From Guillardia theta CCMP2712 (taxonomy: Eukaryota; Protista; Cryptophyta): a stretch of DNA of 64,000 nucleotides. The notes below the pieces were generated by a model. It worked only from the letters and a program-made list of their open reading frames with translations, did not search any database and had not been told where the DNA came from. The stretch covers positions 1,073,806 through 1,137,805 of the forward strand of contig NW_005434666.1 of assembly GCF_000315625.1 (NCBI RefSeq), given 5' to 3'. Both the position numbers and the translations under genes were made by a program. Below, one piece after another: positions 43,920-52,500 of the stretch (its first letter is position 1; every line of letters starts with the position of its first letter).

Positions 43920-45490
43920 CCTGACACATATACATACGAGCTATTCGCTAGCTGTTGACTTCTGACACTCGAGAACCATGCGCTGTAGCAAATCGTGTTA
44001 CTGCTGACGGAAAATCTCGTGACAAGGTATGGGAGTTTGTATCCCCCAGAACATCGAGAGTGTCACTTACTAGTCCAATGATTCGAAGCCTATGATGTCC
44101 GTTGCGTTTCTATCTGTGAAAGAAACCGCTTGTCCTGTTGGAGCTAAATATTGACATGCCATACGTCCTCTCCATTACCTTTTGAGATCTGTTCCGCCAG
44201 CAGAATGTCCTGAAAAGAAAGTCATCGAAGACCTTGTTCAAGAGAGGTCAAGGTGCCTCTAGCGGGTTTAAGGTACGATTCGCTGCCTGGTAGGCTTTCA
44301 GCTGGTGCCTCGCGTCGATGTTGAGATCTCCCACGAGTAAAATTCCTCCCAGCTTGCAGCGATCGCACAAGAGATGCTGTTCTTGGAGCTTCAGCCCGAC
44401 TGTTTCGCGTATGTGTCGTACGATTTCAGACACCTGTGCAGAACGCTGAGTTTTGAACTGAACATTTTGACATACTTGGGATTGGCGAACACTTCTCGTG
44501 TATATTCCGCATGAATTTACCGCATAACTGGTAGGAGAAGTCAAGAGAAGGAATGAAAGTCTTGACAATCTCACCTCGAAAGGTGCAAGAAGAATGCTTC
44601 CAGTCCCATCAGCCACCAACTTCACAAGTCAAGGATCAATGCACGGCCTTGAAGCGTTAGGGACTCACTTGCGAGGCTGTATGCTGTGCAGAGTCCTTCC
44701 CTTCCCGCATTGCAGATGCGTGTTGCCAACCTTCAACCTTGACAAACGATCTGAGATCTCAAGGTCTGCAAAAATCGACCCCTTCCAAGTCCACATATCA
44801 ATTCCACTCCAATCCTGCATCAGCCCGGGAGCATCAGCGGTGGCTGGAGCTGCCCTCTCATCACCGTATATGGGAGCCAGACAGCCTCTGTCAAAGGGAA
44901 GCGGCTCACTATCAGAAGTCCAGCATTCTGACCAAACCAAGGATCTGGCGGCACGACCTTTCAATCCCCGCAGATTTCAGCGACATCCCGGAGTCGAAAA
45001 TGAAATTTACATGATATGTGAAGCCTTGCTCTCTCATCCTGTCCACCAGCCAACGTTGATGTCCCCATATCACAACCCCGAAGACCGACATGGTGAAAAC
45101 CTTGCCGCGGACGATCAGGACCAGAAGGGAACAAACTCTTCCAACAACCTCTTGCATCGCGATCACATCGTACTTGCCGACATAGCGCACGAGATCACTC
45201 AGTCGCTCCCGCACGTTGGATGATCCCTGAGCACAAGAGAGGTCAGAGAGCTCGTCACATCTCCCAAGTTGCACCGAGAACGGCCCGTACACGTTGAAAG
45301 TAAGGAATCTTAGTGAAGGCAAGGGTCCATGCTGAGAGACGTTGACGGCCAAGGGCGGCGATGAAGGGCCAGAGACGCGAGGACGAGATGGACAGCAGGT
45401 GCTTGTGATCACAGCTAGGAGCAGCAGCAGCAGCAGGGCGACGGAGGCAGCGCGCACTAGGAGCATGCTACTGCTCCTGGAATCGTTCAT
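43920..45490 (-). CDS. Endonuclease/exonuclease/phosphatase-fold (neutral sphingomyelinase-like) protein with N-terminal hydrophobic anchor, multi-exon
   Basis: LRFLTFNVY, YDVIAMQEV, NTHLQ and LLVGDLNID motifs. The 3' end is approximate. Confidence 0.75.
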
Positions 45491-45567
45491 TGCTTCATGA
45501 TCGGGGGCGCAATTCCCTGAGGCGGACCTGCACGAGCAAACGCACATCAATGCGTTGGCGGGCAACA

Positions 45568-45992
45568 ACGAGGGAGGGAGGGAGAGATGGAGGGAGAACG
45601 AGGGAGGGTGGAGGGAGGGTGGGAGAACGAGGGAGGGAGGAGGGGAGGGAGAACGAGGAGGGAGGAGGGAGGGAGAACGAGGAGGGAGGAGGGATGGAGG
45701 GAGAACGAGGGAGGGAGGAGGGAGGGTGGGAGAACGAGGGAGGGAGGAGGGAGGGAGAACGAGGGAGGGAGGAGGGAGGGAGAACGAGGAGGATGAGGGA
45801 TGGAGGGAGAACGAGGGAGTAGGAGGGAGGGTGGTAGAACGAGGAGGGAGGAGAGATGGAGGGAGAACGAGGGAGGGAGGAGGGCGAGAGGGNNNNNNNN
45901 NNNNNNNNNNNNNNNNNNNNNNNNNNNNNNNNNNNNNNNNNNNNNNNNNNNNNNNNNNNNNNNNNNNNNNNNNNNNNNNNNNNNNNNNNNNN
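45568..45992. other. GA-rich degenerate repeat (GGGAGAACGAGGGAGGGAGG-like) followed by a 100-N assembly gap (45893-45992)
   Basis: Directly visible. The same motif recurs at 46680-46790. Confidence 0.95.
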
Positions 45993-46661
45993 ATTCCCCC
46001 TCTCGATGCTCTCAAAGAGCTCCATGTAGCTCAAGTCCAGCTCCCCCCCAGCCACACACTCCTCGGGCAGCTGGAAGAAGATCCTCTCCAACCTCCCCTC
46101 CCTCTCGATCTCGATGTTCGCCATCCTCTCCCTAAAGAATGCTCCTGCCTTCTCCGTCTGCTTGATCGCCATCCTGATCACTCCGGTGCGATCAAACGCC
46201 ACCAGGAACGACATGACGAGAAAGTAGCTGATTCCCTCCTTCACAAGCTCCGCCTCCGAGAGTCCGGTCTTCTCTTGCAGCATGTCGTAGCAGTGAGTGG
46301 TTTGCTGCACGATTCCGCTCCACTGCAGGGTAGTGATCATCCGGGCAGGGATGACGTCATCCTGGACGCCCTCCAGGAAGGCGTTGAGACAAGTCGACAT
46401 GGCGACCTTGAGCCGCGTCCTCATCAGGTTCCTGACCCTCACCGCCTGCGGGCTCCTGTCGGGCGACTGAGAACTGCTCGAGCAAGTCTCGAAGAAGACG
46501 CGGGAGAAGATGCGATCCACGAGGTCGAAGAAGTCAGCGGTCGACAGCTCCCACTGGTTGTCGAGGTTGGGGCCGTACATGGCGTCAGCGATCATCATGA
46601 ACGCGCGGATTATCCCCTCCACCTCGTAGACGTTGGCAGACGCAATGAGAGAGTTGATGTC
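45993..46661 (-). CDS. Isolated exon of an IP3-receptor/ryanodine-receptor-like Ca2+ channel
   Basis: RLKVAMSTCLNAFLEG and FFRERMANIEIEREGRLERIFFQLPEEC resemble the ITPR/RyR 'L..LLSMLEG' and 'IEI.R...E.I.FP.P..C' segments preceding the channel domain. The AG acceptor is at 46662-46663. Confidence 0.65.
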
Positions 46662-47026
46662 CTGAGAGAGGGTTCAGACATGAGGAGAGGAAGAACGAGG
46701 GAGGGAGGAGAGATGGAGGGAGAACGAGGGAGGGAGGAGGGCGAGAGGGAGAACGAGGGAGGGAGGAGAGAGGGAGAGGAGGGAGGACCAGGATCCATGA
46801 AAACTTTTGAGGAAACTAGCTGAGTACGAGGTTGGGTTCGGGGATGGGAAGGGAGACATTGGGATTGCTCTTGGGATTGAGGGAATTGAATTTTGTGTGG
46901 CTCTGATACATTTTGCTGTTAGAGTCTTCTTGTGAGTTCTTCAACTCATTCAATTAAGATTCTTCATTGATCGTCGTTAGTCCATCCTTACTCATGAAAG
47001 AGGCTTGCTCGGCTCAATCAAGTTAG

Positions 47027-49486
47027 ATGGGTTTTGTTGGATGTTTTGGATGCTTCTCTAGAAAGAAGGTTGCCCCGGAGGAGCTCTCTGAAGGAAACGA
47101 GTTGCCCAATGCTTTTCCAACTGAACAGAGACATGTCGAGCAGCATGATCCTCCGGATGACCGTACGGACCAGAACCATATAACGGAGAAGAAGCAGAGG
47201 GAGCGGGAAAAGCAGCAGGAGCAGAAGGAGGAGCAGGTGCGGGAGAAGGAGCAGGGGAACAGTAAAGAGGAGCTAGTGCGGGAGCAGGACCGGGAGCAGG
47301 ACATCGAGGTGTTTTTGGACGACAACAAACTTTCAAAGAACTCAGAGTTGATAGCAAACAAACTTGAGCCCATGCAGGACATACAAGAGCTGAAAGAGGA
47401 ATACCTCCTGCATAAGATTTCTACCATAGGTGGTGAGTCACAGGCGGAAAGAGAGCGCAAGGAGACAATTCTTTTGTGTCATAGTCGATGCCGTCTTGCA
47501 GTCAAGTCGACAAGATTCCAAGTTGTCACTGAGAAACGGCCCAACACTCTATCAGGCCGCTCGGAAGTCTTTCGGCATGCAGTCAGATGTATTGTCTTAG
47601 TGGACTACCATGCCACCAAGTCTGTTGACTTCGAGGCTTCCCTGAGTTTCATCAAGGTGCTGAGAAAGCCTGTCTTTGCGACGAAGTTAGACTCTTACTT
47701 CAACCCTACTGGATCTGTCGCTGCAATCTGTAAAGCCTACGGTACTTGGTTCAACTCGTGGGACGAGCTGGCAAAGGAGCTCAAAGTGGCTGACAGCTTT
47801 ACGTTTGAGGATGCAGACACTGTGGAAAAGGAGAATTCATTCGAAGAAACCAAGGCTGGAGAATCGCCGGAGAGCGAGAAGAACGAGGAGCTTGAGCAGA
47901 GACACGATCTTTTCTTCTCTGCTTGCGAGGACGAGGGAAGATTGATTGCCAAACATCTAGAGCAAGATGTGCTGGTGCAGGGTTTGTTCTCGCACATTCA
48001 AAGGAGCACTGGGCACATGGATCGAGACATGGACCTGATCAAGAGGTCGAAGCTCGTGGTCTTCGTCATCACAGAAGGAACCGCCTGGTCCTCCCTGCAG
48101 CTCATCCACCTGGAGGCTGCTCGGAGCTGGAAGAGGCAACTTCTGCCCATCAAGCGGGAAGGAGTGCCTTTGGGTGACGGTTGGCTCAGCCTAGCGTTAG
48201 CTGGAAAGCTCTACTACGAGATCGATCCCTCCGACCTGAGCAAACTTCGAGTGCCGTTCAAGGAGAACCCAAACTCTCCCATCCGGATCGCCGACTCCAC
48301 ACCAGCGATTGAGATGCTGAGAGCTGCACAAGCTCTCATGCTGTTGGCCAACCGCAAAGTCATCGATTACGATCATCTCTTTGAGGAGCGCAACGAGCAG
48401 ATTGTCTCTATCTACAAGCAGGAGGCGCTTGCGGCGGGCGTGAAGGAGGAAGAGGCAGAAACAATCTGTAATCATCTGGACGTGTCACCAGCTTCGAGTG
48501 TCCTGGAGGAAGCGAATGCTGCTGCATCTGTGACGGAAGAGCAGGTTTCTGGTTTCCCTCCCGCTGTAGAACTTCTTCCTGCTCAACAAGCGCTTCAGAT
48601 GACCGATATTCGTTACACCATCACCCGCTTGGAGCACGTTCCTCCCCAAGAAGTCTGCGATGAGTTTGGCATTCCGATCCCAGGCCTCATGTTTGACCTG
48701 ATGATCTCCTACGAGTGGGGCAGCCAAGAGCAAGCGATTGACTACTTCTTCCAGCTGCGCATGCAGAACGTCAAGCTCTGGTTCGATGTGATGGGGAACA
48801 TGCAAGGGAACATGAACGCAGCCATGGCGGCGGCTGTTGAGAGTGCCGCCTGTCTCTTGGTCCTGCTTTCAGAGCGCTATGAGAAGTCCATCAACTGTCG
48901 CCTGGAGCTGGAATATGCTGTGAGCATCAACAAGCCCATCGTCTTCCTCTGCCTCCCAAGCTACGACGTGCTCTCTATGGCCGGCTGGATCAAGGAGATC
49001 ATCGGAGAGCCGATGCAGGTGTATCCTGCTGCCGAGGGCTCAGCCGAGGTTGCCTCCAAGTACCTCGTGCTTCAAGGATCTGCTCCTTCTGTTCGCGGCG
49101 TTCCCCTGCCGAATGTCATAGCCACTGCTGTCCGCCGCCTCGCACAGCTGAGAAACAGTCGGACCCGTCCGTGCCGAGACGCCACGCCCCTCCTCTTCCT
49201 CAAGACGCGGGCGCTGATCTCAGCAGCTGCGAGCGCGTCGGAGACGTCGGGGATGGTCGTATGCTCGCGGTGCAAGACTCTCTTCAACCCCCTGGTGTCT
49301 TCGGAGGGGAAGTGCCGCAAACACTCGAGCTACTACATGGGCGGGACGATCATGGCTGGTCGGTGGGTGTGCTGCAACGACAACGACAAGGACGGTCCTG
49401 GTTGTACGCCATGCTCGCACATGGCTGAAGCGAGGACATGGACGTTGATGCAAGGGTATGGCACGCATACTTGGGAACCTGCTTAG
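47027..49486 (+). CDS. Intronless multi-TIR-domain protein with a C-terminal Btk-type Cys/His zinc motif
   Basis: FDLMISYEW...LWFD...SERYEKSINCRLELEYA (TIR_2-like), two degenerate upstream TIR-like units, and CRKHSSYY...GRWVCCNDNDKDGPGC. Confidence 0.82.
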   Translation: MGFVGCFGCFSRKKVAPEELSEGNELPNAFPTEQRHVEQHDPPDDRTDQNHITEKKQREREKQQEQKEEQVREKEQGNSKEELVREQDREQDIEVFLDDNKLSKNSELIANKLEPMQDIQELKEEYLLHKISTIGGESQAERERKETILLCHSRCRLAVKSTRFQVVTEKRPNTLSGRSEVFRHAVRCIVLVDYHATKSVDFEASLSFIKVLRKPVFATKLDSYFNPTGSVAAICKAYGTWFNSWDELAKELKVADSFTFEDADTVEKENSFEETKAGESPESEKNEELEQRHDLFFSACEDEGRLIAKHLEQDVLVQGLFSHIQRSTGHMDRDMDLIKRSKLVVFVITEGTAWSSLQLIHLEAARSWKRQLLPIKREGVPLGDGWLSLALAGKLYYEIDPSDLSKLRVPFKENPNSPIRIADSTPAIEMLRAAQALMLLANRKVIDYDHLFEERNEQIVSIYKQEALAAGVKEEEAETICNHLDVSPASSVLEEANAAASVTEEQVSGFPPAVELLPAQQALQMTDIRYTITRLEHVPPQEVCDEFGIPIPGLMFDLMISYEWGSQEQAIDYFFQLRMQNVKLWFDVMGNMQGNMNAAMAAAVESAACLLVLLSERYEKSINCRLELEYAVSINKPIVFLCLPSYDVLSMAGWIKEIIGEPMQVYPAAEGSAEVASKYLVLQGSAPSVRGVPLPNVIATAVRRLAQLRNSRTRPCRDATPLLFLKTRALISAAASASETSGMVVCSRCKTLFNPLVSSEGKCRKHSSYYMGGTIMAGRWVCCNDNDKDGPGCTPCSHMAEARTWTLMQGYGTHTWEPA

Positions 49487-49519
49487 CAAAAAGGTGACAG
49501 GAAGCACAACCACCCTGCA

Positions 49520-52500
49520 TGTAATGACGTAGCAGTATCAAGTTAACTTGTTGTAATGTTTTCCATGTTATGTAAAGGTGATTAGGTAGAAAGTTGATAT
49601 CAATCGTAACTTCCGGCGACATTGCGGCATCGCCCATGTTGTTTGGTATCAAGGTGCTCCAGCGGTAAACATCAAGACTTGAAAGAGCGATATGAATTAA
49701 GATAGAAATAATTCACATGTGTTGAGACGAATAATAAGAGAAGAACACACAATGCAAGATCGCATCAGAAGCAATCTAACACTTGAAAATCTTTAATGAC
49801 ATCTCCCACTAATATACAAGAAAAACTCAAACCCACACGCTCATTTCTTTCTGCTTTCAAAACTCACCCGGCGAGTGGCCATAAAGAGGCCAATAACTGT
49901 AAAGCTGTAAGAGCCGAAGAGGGACGGGCGGGGGCAGGCAGAGAAGTCGGACAAAGAAAGCAGCAGCAAGCTAAGACAGGGAGAGAAAAGAGTATCTTAC
50001 GGATCTCTGCTGAGATAAAGTAGCGGAGCTGACGCATTAGGCGCGAATGGGTTGTACAGGGCATCACACGTGAAAGGATCTAAAGCGACGTGAGTGGTTA
50101 ACCAGCAGGAGAGAAAGGAAGGGCAGAAATAAGCAAGAAGGAGGGTGAGAGGGAGGGGAAAGGGAGGGAGGGAGAGAGCGGACGATCAGTGAAAGAGTGT
50201 GGCTCACTAGGTGTGAAAGCCTCCTCTGCCAATAAGATGCCCAACATCCTGACATTCAGCTCGGCATAGTATAAGGTGTCAAAGTCTTCAACTTGCCCCA
50301 GCTCTTCGACCACCTGCATCGTGACCATGTCAGGTCGCAGAGCAGGGAAGCCCAGACCAACATGCTGAGACGGGTCTTGCATCTTAAAGTCGATGTAGTT
50401 GTTGTAGGCGTCCTGGAAAGTCTCATTCCCTGGCTTTCCGTCGATCCACTTCTTCTCCAGCCCTCGTCTCCGCGTCGGTTGACCCGGTCGCCGCGCGTCG
50501 ATGTCAAGTCCCTGTCACGCTCTTGAGGCACTGAGAGCAGTTGGAGCAGGTTGGCAACGGCACCTTCTCACGCACGTACTTCTTGACCCTGACAAGGCTG
50601 TGCTCGTCGTAGAGACTCTTTGCCTGCCACATGAAATCTTCCATCTACCGCGGGGTCACTCACAATCAGCTTCATGTCTGAGTCCTTACGATGGCGCGCG
50701 CCATGTAAGCGTCATTATACTGCGACTCGTTTGCAAGGATCGAGATGTTGCAGCTGCAGGTCTGTCCGAAAGTTCCTGTCAAAACGAGTTTAGCACAAGA
50801 CACTCTTTGATAGATTGTGAGTAAAATTCACCTTTGGGGATCTTTGTGAAATCCAAATTTCCGTCTTGAATGCAAGGCAAAGGACAGTAGCCCTGTTTGA
50901 AGATTTCGTAGATTCTTCCAAACCTGGATCAAATTTAAAGGAATTGTCTCTCTCTGCTTCATCGCACCTGTTACAGAGTCTGTCTGGAAGTTGCAACGAG
51001 AAATCTGAAATGGTCAAGTCCACATCTATCGGGTTCGGTGAGATAGCTGCTCCGCACGCCTGGTTGCCTGCCCGATGATTTAGATGAAGTTGAAGGCAGA
51101 TGGAAGCACAGAGGGGAGGGGATGAGAAGAAAGAGAGAGATAGAGGAAACAGAAGGAAGAGAGGAGGGGGGGACGAAGAGATAGAAGAGATATGGAGGGA
51201 GGGTGCAAGCAAGAGAGAAGATGGCCAGCATGGGTATGAGGAATGTGGGAGGCATTACCGATGAGCTGAGAGATCGAATTTGGTGGACAACATTCTAGAA
51301 CGCCTGTTGAGAACTTTACAGACAACTTGCCCTGAGATCCATTTCGGGGTACCGTTTGCAGGATTCGCTCTAGTTGTCAACCCCAAGTTTGTCCATGAAT
51401 ACTGATGACTCATGAGTTCTGAAGTCTGGTTGCCAGGCTTTACAACACAAGACTGATTTCGAATCAAGTCGTTCAACTACAGACAGTCATTGCATCATGT
51501 AATCCAATAAATCACCGTCATACCAGAGGGCAAAAAATGCATTCTCCCGTCCGTGGAGACGTTACCTGCATTGCTTTAGAAACATCAAAAACCATAATAT
51601 TTACATATCCGCTCGCTTCGCATGGTTTCTGTAAACACAAACCAGTCTTGTTATCTAGTCCCCACTGGCATCCATTGTTGTTCACGAGCTCCGCAGCAAT
51701 GTCGCATTTGGATCCAAACTGACAAAATTTTCATGATCGCTGAGAGGATGAGACGAAGCCAAACCTTGTCGCCTCTCACGGACATGGAAAGCTACAAGGT
51801 TGGATCAGATGATCTCAATCAACATCTAAATGCATTCACACCCATCCAGCACCATTCTGAGGTATGTACTCGGAATCCTCGAGTTTGGATGCTGTGCCTG
51901 CAACCCCCGTCAGAGAAGAACACTGGACGAGAAAGCTTCCTGCGGGCCATTCTTCAGAGATCAGAGGAGCCATCCAGATCTCATCTTCGAGCAGTTGCGA
52001 GCGCGACATTCCTGTCCGAGCTCAGGTCTGCCTCAGAGTCTCTAGCAGTACCGCTAATTGATATCGTCAGCTCGTATCTTGTGTTTGTTTTCCACTTCGT
52101 CGATGACAAGAGTGCACAATTCGGCTGTCATGGTCAGTTAAGATTTGCGTTCAAGGTTGGACTACCACGCCGCCGCGAGGCTCCACCAGCTTGTGTGCAA
52201 AGGAAGAAGTCGTCGAAGATTCGTAAAAATTGTCGTATCTTCATGAAATCAGTCACTTGCTCTCCAGGTTTTTGTACGAGACCCACCTCATATATTGAAA
52301 CGACGACGCGTAAAATTCGTCATTCGAAAGAAAATCTGAAAGCTCCCCGAACTGTAACCTTCGTCAATTAGGACAAGGTGACGAGAAAAAAATCGATATG
52401 CGTTCCTGAATAGCTTCGTAAAGAAATTCAACTGTTGAGGAGCTCGTAGACGTCGATGTCTTGGGAGAAAAGAACTGCAGATTTGTACCCTGCTCGTACA

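Follow-up and report, generated by a model that had tools for sequence, protein, structure and literature searches.

Which of the TIR folds in a multi-TIR chain could be an enzyme, and what the remaining folds might do for it, is the question raised by a gene of the cryptophyte Guillardia theta CCMP2712. The gene lies in a stretch of 64,000 nucleotides of contig NW_005434666.1 (positions 1,073,806 to 1,137,805 of the forward strand), which is called the window here and whose numbering is used throughout. Its open reading frame (ORF), at 47027-49486 on the plus strand, opens with an ATG that is the first in-frame start codon after a stop and encodes 819 residues plus a stop codon, with the N-terminus MGFVGCFGCFSRKK. 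Location, strand and length coincide exactly with those of an earlier note, made from the letters of the DNA, which proposed a lipid-anchored immune NADase with three TIR-like units, a single catalytic glutamate and a zinc motif of the BTK type.

Searched in all six frames, the 87-Mb assembly of the organism itself gave one copy; the gene, a nuclear one, is single-copy, expressed and free of introns. For the protein as a whole, we think that the best explanation, with a probability of roughly 0.55, is a triple-TIR protein with an acylation motif, in which the third TIR (TIR3) would be the unit that cleaves nicotinamide adenine dinucleotide (NAD+) and units 1 and 2 would be its partners.

Three TIR folds in a single chain

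Relatives of the protein were collected by an exhaustive HMMER search with residues 131-819. At E<=0.001 it gave 1782 proteins, of which 39 remained at E<1e-30, some 12 of them spanning residues ~157-819 at 30-50% identity. This search was used instead of a word-indexed one with the full protein, which found only a relative of 94% identity, the low-complexity N-terminus having probably consumed the words. The 94% relative is encoded on a marine metagenome contig, likewise without introns. From N- to C-terminus, the proposed architecture comprises a candidate acylation motif, a disordered charged spacer, three TIR folds, a helical linker and a two-zinc module; more exactly, the helical linker stands between unit 2 and TIR3, and the zinc module follows TIR3. 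The features are as follows.

47027..49486, plus strand: coding sequence, 819 residues and stop, from the first in-frame start codon after a stop
47027..47068, plus strand: candidate acylation motif (Gly2, Cys6, Cys9, then RKK), conserved in the 94% relative
47069..47461, plus strand: charged low-complexity spacer, residues 15-145, probably disordered (indels and substitutions against the 94% relative; low predicted local distance difference test score, pLDDT, at the start of the model)
47462..47812, plus strand: TIR-fold unit 1, residues 146-262 (hhalign, pLDDT 93, VIA-align, Pfam matches of orthologues)
47813..47896, plus strand: acidic flexible linker, residues 263-290 (pLDDT <50 at model residues 132-154; ratio of non-synonymous to synonymous rates, dN/dS, ~1)
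47897..48271, plus strand: TIR-fold unit 2, residues 291-415 (hhalign against TIR3, Pfam matches of orthologues, profile matches in the PDB)
48272..48682, plus strand: helical linker, residues 416-552, with a conserved segment at its end leading into TIR3 (model helices 296-386 with high pLDDT; alignment)
48683..49171, plus strand: TIR3, canonical TIR domain, residues 553-715 (Pfam TIR_2; invariant D, Y, S, C and Y columns; profile matches)
48905..48907, plus strand: codon of Glu627, the canonical TIR catalytic glutamate (Glu in 38 of 40 family members)
49244..49483, plus strand: C-terminal zinc module, residues 740-819, with eight conserved ligands and a conserved beta tail (BTK match; invariant Cys/His columns)

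TIR3 belongs to Pfam TIR_2 (PF13676), which it matches over residues 559-644 with 46 bits, the cut-off being 28 (E 9.2e-12); its profile matches the TIR domains of Cat1 and MyD88. Units 1 and 2 of G. theta, taken alone, gave no Pfam match. For profile comparison, the family alignment was cut into separate alignments of each unit. By hhalign, unit 2 aligned with TIR3 (98.0%, E 1.5e-13, 109 columns), unit 1 with unit 2 (97.9%, E 3.2e-13, 106 columns) and unit 1 with TIR3 over the beta-C/alpha-C/beta-D core (92%, E 6e-7). Moreover, the orthologous segments match Pfam TIR_2 directly in 21 of 34 cases for unit 2 (best E 3.7e-9) and in 8 of 31 for unit 1 (best E 6.5e-10). Searched against the PDB, the unit 2 profile gave weak matches, nearly all of them to TIR domains, and the unit 1 profile gave nothing significant among PDB sequences.

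Folded alone, unit 1 was modelled with a pLDDT of 93, with helix alpha-A shortened in the G. theta protein. When this model was compared with 48,161 chains by VIA-align, TIR domains made up most of the top rows, with Z values of 9.4 for RPS4/RRS1, 9.2 for MyD88 and ThsB, 8.8 for SpbK and 8.7 for SARM1; these values are modest, and nucleoside deoxyribosyltransferases, which are relatives of the TIR fold, are also found in the rows. A Foldseek search with unit 1 alone gave no match at E<=0.001, TIR-APAZ, RPS4, small GTPases and nucleoside hydrolases being intermixed in the results. We assign unit 1 to the TIR fold because the profile, orthologue and fold evidence agree. Judged by profiles and models, all three units are TIR folds, as the earlier note had proposed. 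It had held that its reading would fall if units 1 and 2 did not adopt this fold; the hhalign alignments, the TIR_2 matches of orthologues and the fold comparison of unit 1 all speak for a TIR fold. All three units turned out somewhat longer than had been drawn (47462-47812, 47897-48271 and 48683-49171). The best explanation of their likeness is that the three folds are homologous and arose by an ancient internal triplication.

An AlphaFold2 model of residues 131-819, built from an alignment of 42 sequences, reached a pLDDT of 89.5 and a predicted template-modelling (TM) score of 0.90. It contains three beta-alpha units, the helical linker and a small C-terminal beta/zinc domain, and the folded part is predicted to form one compact body. 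A prediction of units 1-2 and TIR3 plus zinc module as separate chains scored 0.00; it did not use the family alignment and is given no weight on packing in either direction. With the whole 689-residue model, Foldseek results were dominated by spurious multi-domain alignments (root-mean-square deviation ~20 Å, proteins with SIS and GTPase domains), TIR rows being present as well. The nearest structural neighbour of the whole model was a TIR_2+BTK cluster of the ESM Atlas, mostly from rotifers, and the likeness is weak (TM 0.33 by model, 0.52 by match). By sequence, the whole protein found only chance-level matches in the PDB.

One canonical glutamate, two conserved non-canonical units

The equivalence of Ser205 in unit 1, His361 in unit 2 and Glu627 in TIR3 comes from ungapped hhalign alignments, and it agrees with the earlier assignment of a single canonical glutamate to unit 3 (codon starting at 48905), with His in unit 2 and Ser in unit 1. 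Within the family, the position of Glu627 is Glu in 38 of 40 members, Ser621 is kept in 39 of 40 and Cys624 in all 40. The canonical position of unit 1 is never Glu across the family, and that of unit 2 is variable (Leu 7, His 6, Glu 4, among others). On these sequence grounds, TIR3 alone, without units 1 and 2, has the glutamate of a catalytic TIR. An independent structural catalogue in which AlphaFold TIRs were superposed on E85 of ThsB contains the entry 'L1JXD3_2, Guillardia theta, HIS' (bioRxiv 10.64898/2026.04.20.719644). L1JXD3 is very probably the present protein, since the gene is single-copy, an identity that we infer; the His listed for its 'TIR 2' agrees with His361.

Both non-canonical units keep an acidic residue beside the canonical position. 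In unit 1 it stands one residue earlier, at position 204, which is Glu or Asp in 25 of 31 family members and Ala in G. theta; in unit 2 it is Glu363, two residues further on, with Glu or Asp in 30 of 34. Compared with the 94% relative, dN/dS is 0.16 for the folded part, and unit 1 has accumulated 13 synonymous and 0 non-synonymous changes; for residues 1-130 and the acidic linker the ratio is ~1, from small counts. Since each unit has a family-conserved offset acidic residue and is under purifying selection, units 1 and 2 read as conserved non-canonical domains, and not as decaying or simple dead copies.

A putative zinc module with CHORD-like and BTK patterns

The C-terminal 80 residues are the most conserved part of the protein, with a mean column identity of 48%. 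Eight ligands are conserved, C746, C749, C763, H766, C782, C783, C793 and H798; all of these columns are invariant except that of H766, which is nearly so, and the pattern CCCHCCCH is kept in 35 of 38 rows. The Cys/His pattern described earlier is present, with the correction that the conserved set reaches His798 and that C796, which had been counted in, is not conserved. In the 94% relative (L001, on a contig of the ENA metagenomes) a Tyr stands at the His766 position, which could be a sequencing error or a tolerated substitution.

The BTK-type motif of the earlier note was recovered by Pfam BTK (PF00779) at residues 776-798, above the cut-off of 24, with 24.3 bits in the whole protein and 25.9 in the C-terminal piece; the match covers model positions 8-30 only. 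It is found in 36 of 36 family members (best E 2.7e-8), and no PH domain adjoining it was found by Pfam. This motif is the inner half of the eight-ligand module, whose order, C-x2-C, C-x2-H, CC and C-x4-H, looks like that of the CHORD pattern. In the PDB, the family zinc profile matched the BTK motifs of ITK (E 0.0018) and BMX (E 0.0069), as well as CHORD-containing protein 1 (2yrt, E 0.016, profile positions 10-62, seven of the eight ligands). Pfam CHORD (PF04968) itself matched neither the C-terminal piece, searched to E<=10, nor any of the 36 family members, searched to E<=0.1.

Two other ORFs of G. theta carry related sequences, neither with a TIR by Pfam. L008 (G000:C2:114153-114320, minus strand) matches the family zinc profile with E 3.7e-5 and Pfam CHORD with 22.2 bits, the cut-off being 24.6. 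L009 (G000:C7:238767-238865, minus strand) has sub-threshold BTK and CHORD matches and apparently contains two such modules.

From its sequence, we call the C-terminal domain CHORD-like with an inner BTK motif, because of the CHORD ligand order, the profile matches to ITK, BMX and 2yrt, the bridging ORF L008 and the lack of a Pfam CHORD match; strictly, the module as a whole is a member of neither Pfam family. The eight-ligand pattern of CHORD binds two zinc ions, and by analogy the present module is expected to hold two as well.

The N-terminus and a possible lipid anchor

Gly2, Cys6, Cys9 and the basic residues are kept in the 94% relative. In the cryptophyte/oomycete clade of the family, every listed homologue with a complete N-terminus starts with MG-x3-[S/T/C], and 12 homologues fit PROSITE PS00008, namely the 94% relative (MGIVGC) and 11 others. 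Members of the other clade often begin directly at the first strand of unit 1. N-myristoylation looks ancestral in the cryptophyte/oomycete clade on this sequence pattern. For the G. theta protein, the lipid anchor of the earlier note stands in a weaker form: the clade-wide MG start and the Cys/basic patch shared with the 94% relative support it, but Phe3 is excluded by the PS00008 pattern, Gly2 and Cys6 being present. Some lipid anchoring, by myristate and/or by palmitate on Cys6/Cys9, is probable, the odds judged from the sequence being moderately in its favour.

An enzyme or a scaffold

In the mechanism that we favour, TIR3, as the only unit with the canonical glutamate, would cleave NAD+, probably with a product of the cyclic ADP-ribose (cADPR) type. 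Units 1 and 2, as non-canonical TIRs, would supply within one chain the TIR-TIR contacts that other TIR enzymes gain by oligomerising, and they may either complete or gate the single active site. Besides, the N-terminal lipid anchor would hold the enzyme at the membrane, and the zinc module would serve in protein interaction or in regulation. These parts do not have the same strength. It is reasonable, from the sequence features, to regard the protein as a candidate NAD-cleaving signalling enzyme; the chance that TIR3 does cleave NAD is about even; and the role of units 1 and 2 as built-in assembly partners is given a lower chance than that.

In the only broad screen that we found, 154 TIRs were assayed, and among those bearing the glutamate 12 of 61 from animals and 4 of 29 from protists made a cyclic ADPR isomer in E. 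coli; L1JXD3_2 is marked 'no' there and lies outside the tested set (bioRxiv 10.64898/2026.04.20.719644). A different Glu-bearing TIR of G. theta, L1IYH1, made cADPR and depleted NAD+ in E. coli (bioRxiv 10.64898/2026.04.20.719644). Several points weigh against the favoured mechanism. The conserved glutamate is a weak predictor, because only 4 of 29 Glu-TIRs of unicellular eukaryotes gave detectable isomer in that screen; the TIR3 profile fits the adaptor MyD88 about as well as the enzyme Cat1; and Phe3 departs from the myristoylation pattern.

The rival that survives best is a non-enzymatic adaptor or scaffold, in which the TIRs and the zinc module alike would act at a membrane purely as surfaces for binding other proteins, as in MyD88 and MAL, and Glu627 would have a structural or binding role. 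The low yield of the Glu-bearing protist TIRs in a heterologous screen, the match of the TIR3 profile to MyD88 (E ~2e-4) and the missing canonical glutamate in two of the three units all fit it, as does the established role of CHORD and BTK modules, where they are known, in interaction or stabilisation. We nevertheless consider it unlikely, if well worth keeping in mind: Glu627, Ser621 and Cys624 are almost invariant down to 25-30% identity, which is typical of catalytic TIRs, and inactivity of an isolated domain in E. coli is no proof that the assembled protein is inactive.

The acidic residues of units 1 and 2 suggest another rival, namely more than one active site, with unit 1 and/or unit 2 acting through register-shifted residues, or another chemistry or substrate such as nucleic acids; plant TIRs reportedly have 2',3'-cyclic nucleotide monophosphate synthetase activity. 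The conservation of these residues one position before (unit 1) and two after (unit 2) the canonical one, together with the strong purifying selection on both units, would be explained by it. It is improbable, as G. theta itself has Ala at position 204 and the offsets would turn the side chains to other faces of alpha-C if the helix register is kept.

The enzyme reading can be extended to a bolder form, which we hold only as a speculation and believe to be rather unlikely in full. The protein would be an ancient, pan-eukaryotic, membrane-tethered and 'pre-assembled' TIR enzyme whose three TIRs mimic an oligomer, with one composite site (Glu627) completed or gated by two pseudo-TIRs. Its CHORD-like domain would couple it to a partner (e.g., HSP90) or a ligand, and it would work as a stand-alone synthase of NAD-derived second messengers, independent of NLR-type sensors. 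The earlier note had remarked on the absence of an NB-ARC or LRR sensor, and the Pfam scan of the protein and its pieces agrees, with no NB-ARC, NACHT or LRR found. A PADLOC scan gave nothing meaningful; the protein is not placed among the NLR/STAND proteins, no NB-ARC/NACHT ATPase or repeat sensor appearing in either scan.

The transcript and the origin of the gene

The transcript features are the following.

46798..49592, plus strand: unspliced mRNA, 5' end approximate (colinear contigs of runs X1-X3 and poly(A) reads of run X19)
46798..47026, plus strand: 5' untranslated region (UTR) (transcript start from the contigs; window sequence)

Contigs from three runs (X1-X3) cover the gene at 46798-49592, 46841-49580 and 46914-49586, all colinear with the genome with 0 gaps. 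These runs are recorded as probable RNA only; they behave as RNA because they also carry spliced contigs of the next gene. In the raw reads of the RNA-seq run X19, non-templated A-runs occur 21 times after 49592 and 4 times after 49752, in reads whose first mates lie on the plus strand, which places the main poly(A) site at 49592 and a minor one near 49752. From the colinear contigs and the poly(A) reads it follows that the gene is expressed, polyadenylated and intronless; the last had been claimed before and is confirmed here by unspliced contigs in the three runs that splice the next gene. A larger spliced gene was considered and rejected, as all three contigs begin within 46798-46914 and are colinear with the genome. 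The 5' UTR is ~229 nt long and the 3' UTR 106 nt. Within the former are two short upstream ORFs in frame with the main one, at ATG 46844 (20 residues) and ATG 46994 (10 residues); both are closed by stops upstream of the main ATG and could affect translation.

The adjoining gene (window 49809-50300, extending further) is probably on the minus strand and has two short introns, at 49897-50000 (104 nt) and 50080-50207 (128 nt), which are removed in RNA contigs of three runs; their CT..AC ends on the plus strand are GT..AG on the minus strand. On the other side, window ~45000-46100 contains an assembly gap, a stretch of N that several frames render as X. The simple repeat on its flanks is strongly skewed between the strands and gives Pro/Ser/Leu-rich or Gly/Arg/Glu-rich peptides depending on the frame.

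Named members of the family come from Phytophthora ramorum, Lagenidium, Saprolegnia, the chytrid Obelidium, the flatworm Macrostomum, the nemertean Lineus and the annelid Owenia, and they are annotated throughout as 'hypothetical' or 'TIR domain-containing'; relatives are probably present in rotifers and sea anemones, too. Six homologues of 266-298 residues (P0012, P0013, P0015, P0022, P0033 and P0034) consist of TIR3 and the zinc module only, and may be prediction fragments or a genuine short form. A tree, built by quick maximum likelihood only, divides the family into two well-supported clades. In the first, G. theta and three metagenomic sequences form a cryptophyte-like group that is sister to the oomycetes; the second holds the chytrid, the animals and an AT-rich protist group. 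The nearest named TIRs outside the family, seven of seven, are eukaryotic (a tunicate, a chytrid, an annelid, two hydrozoans, Paulinella and a brachiopod).

Retroposition or bacterial transfer is not supported, because the family is widespread in eukaryotes, the named TIRs closest to it come from eukaryotes as well and the genome carries no poly(A) tract where the transcript ends; in the deep past, either could have taken place. That the gene was recently retroposed or horizontally acquired, as the earlier note had suggested, and is not an old eukaryotic resident, is very improbable: its lack of introns, set against two short ones within 400 bases in the neighbouring gene, and the patchy distribution of the family among eukaryotes speak for it, but besides the missing poly(A) remnant, its GC content is similar to that of the surrounding DNA, no second, intron-bearing parent copy exists in the G. 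theta genome, the closest relatives in the quick tree are cryptophyte-like, and none of the seven named outside TIRs is bacterial.

Comparison with known systems

Part of this architecture is already in the literature. Van der Burg et al. reported in 2016 that L1JXD3_GUITH, which is very probably the present protein, and H3H1G6_PHYRM were the only other proteins then known with the TIR_2+BTK domain pair (PMC5094078). These are of the same family, because H3H1G6 falls in the cluster of homologue P0005. That account is without the cryptic N-terminal TIR, which implies the triplication, the family-wide pattern of catalytic residues, the eight-ligand CHORD-like module, the conserved acylation-type start and the wide eukaryotic distribution; these are new here, as are the compact predicted body and the transcript evidence. 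Since the domain pair was catalogued in 2016, the advance is one of anatomy and distribution, not of function.

By its sequence pattern, the zinc module resembles CHORD proteins (RAR1, CHORDC1/Chp-1 and melusin; PF04968) in the order of the eight ligands. It differs from them in spacing and in the residues that are not ligands, and it is followed by a conserved beta tail; moreover, a CS or SGT1-like partner domain is lacking. Because plant TIR-NLR receptors have CHORD proteins as chaperones, we think that a CHORD-like module beside a TIR deserves attention. With the BTK motif of Tec kinases (PF00779) the module shares residues 776-798, with G-R-W-V-C-C followed by G-C. In Tec kinases, however, this motif holds a single zinc and lies packed against a PH domain, and the present protein has no PH domain by Pfam. 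In addition, the first seven positions of the Pfam model, in which the His ligand of Tec kinases lies, are unmatched here, and four extra conserved ligands stand upstream.

TIR enzymes have a central place in the immunity and cell death of bacteria, plants and animals. With the TIR NADases (SARM1, plant TIR/TNL proteins, ThsB, AbTir and Cat1), the present protein shares the fold of TIR3, the catalytic glutamate on alpha-C and the preceding S-x-x-C, and the model of unit 1 aligns with the TIRs of RPS4, ThsB and SARM1 at Z 8.7-9.4. In the known enzymes each chain has a single TIR, and activation comes from oligomerisation through other domains (SAM, NB-ARC) or in filaments; to our knowledge, all well-studied TIR enzymes are active only when separate TIR chains assemble. 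The present protein has instead three TIRs in one chain, a single canonical glutamate and no known oligomerisation or sensor domain. Its family, from cryptophytes and oomycetes to animals, would extend NAD-derived signalling to poorly studied protists, Phytophthora included, and would be a good case for learning how contacts between TIRs build or gate an active site.

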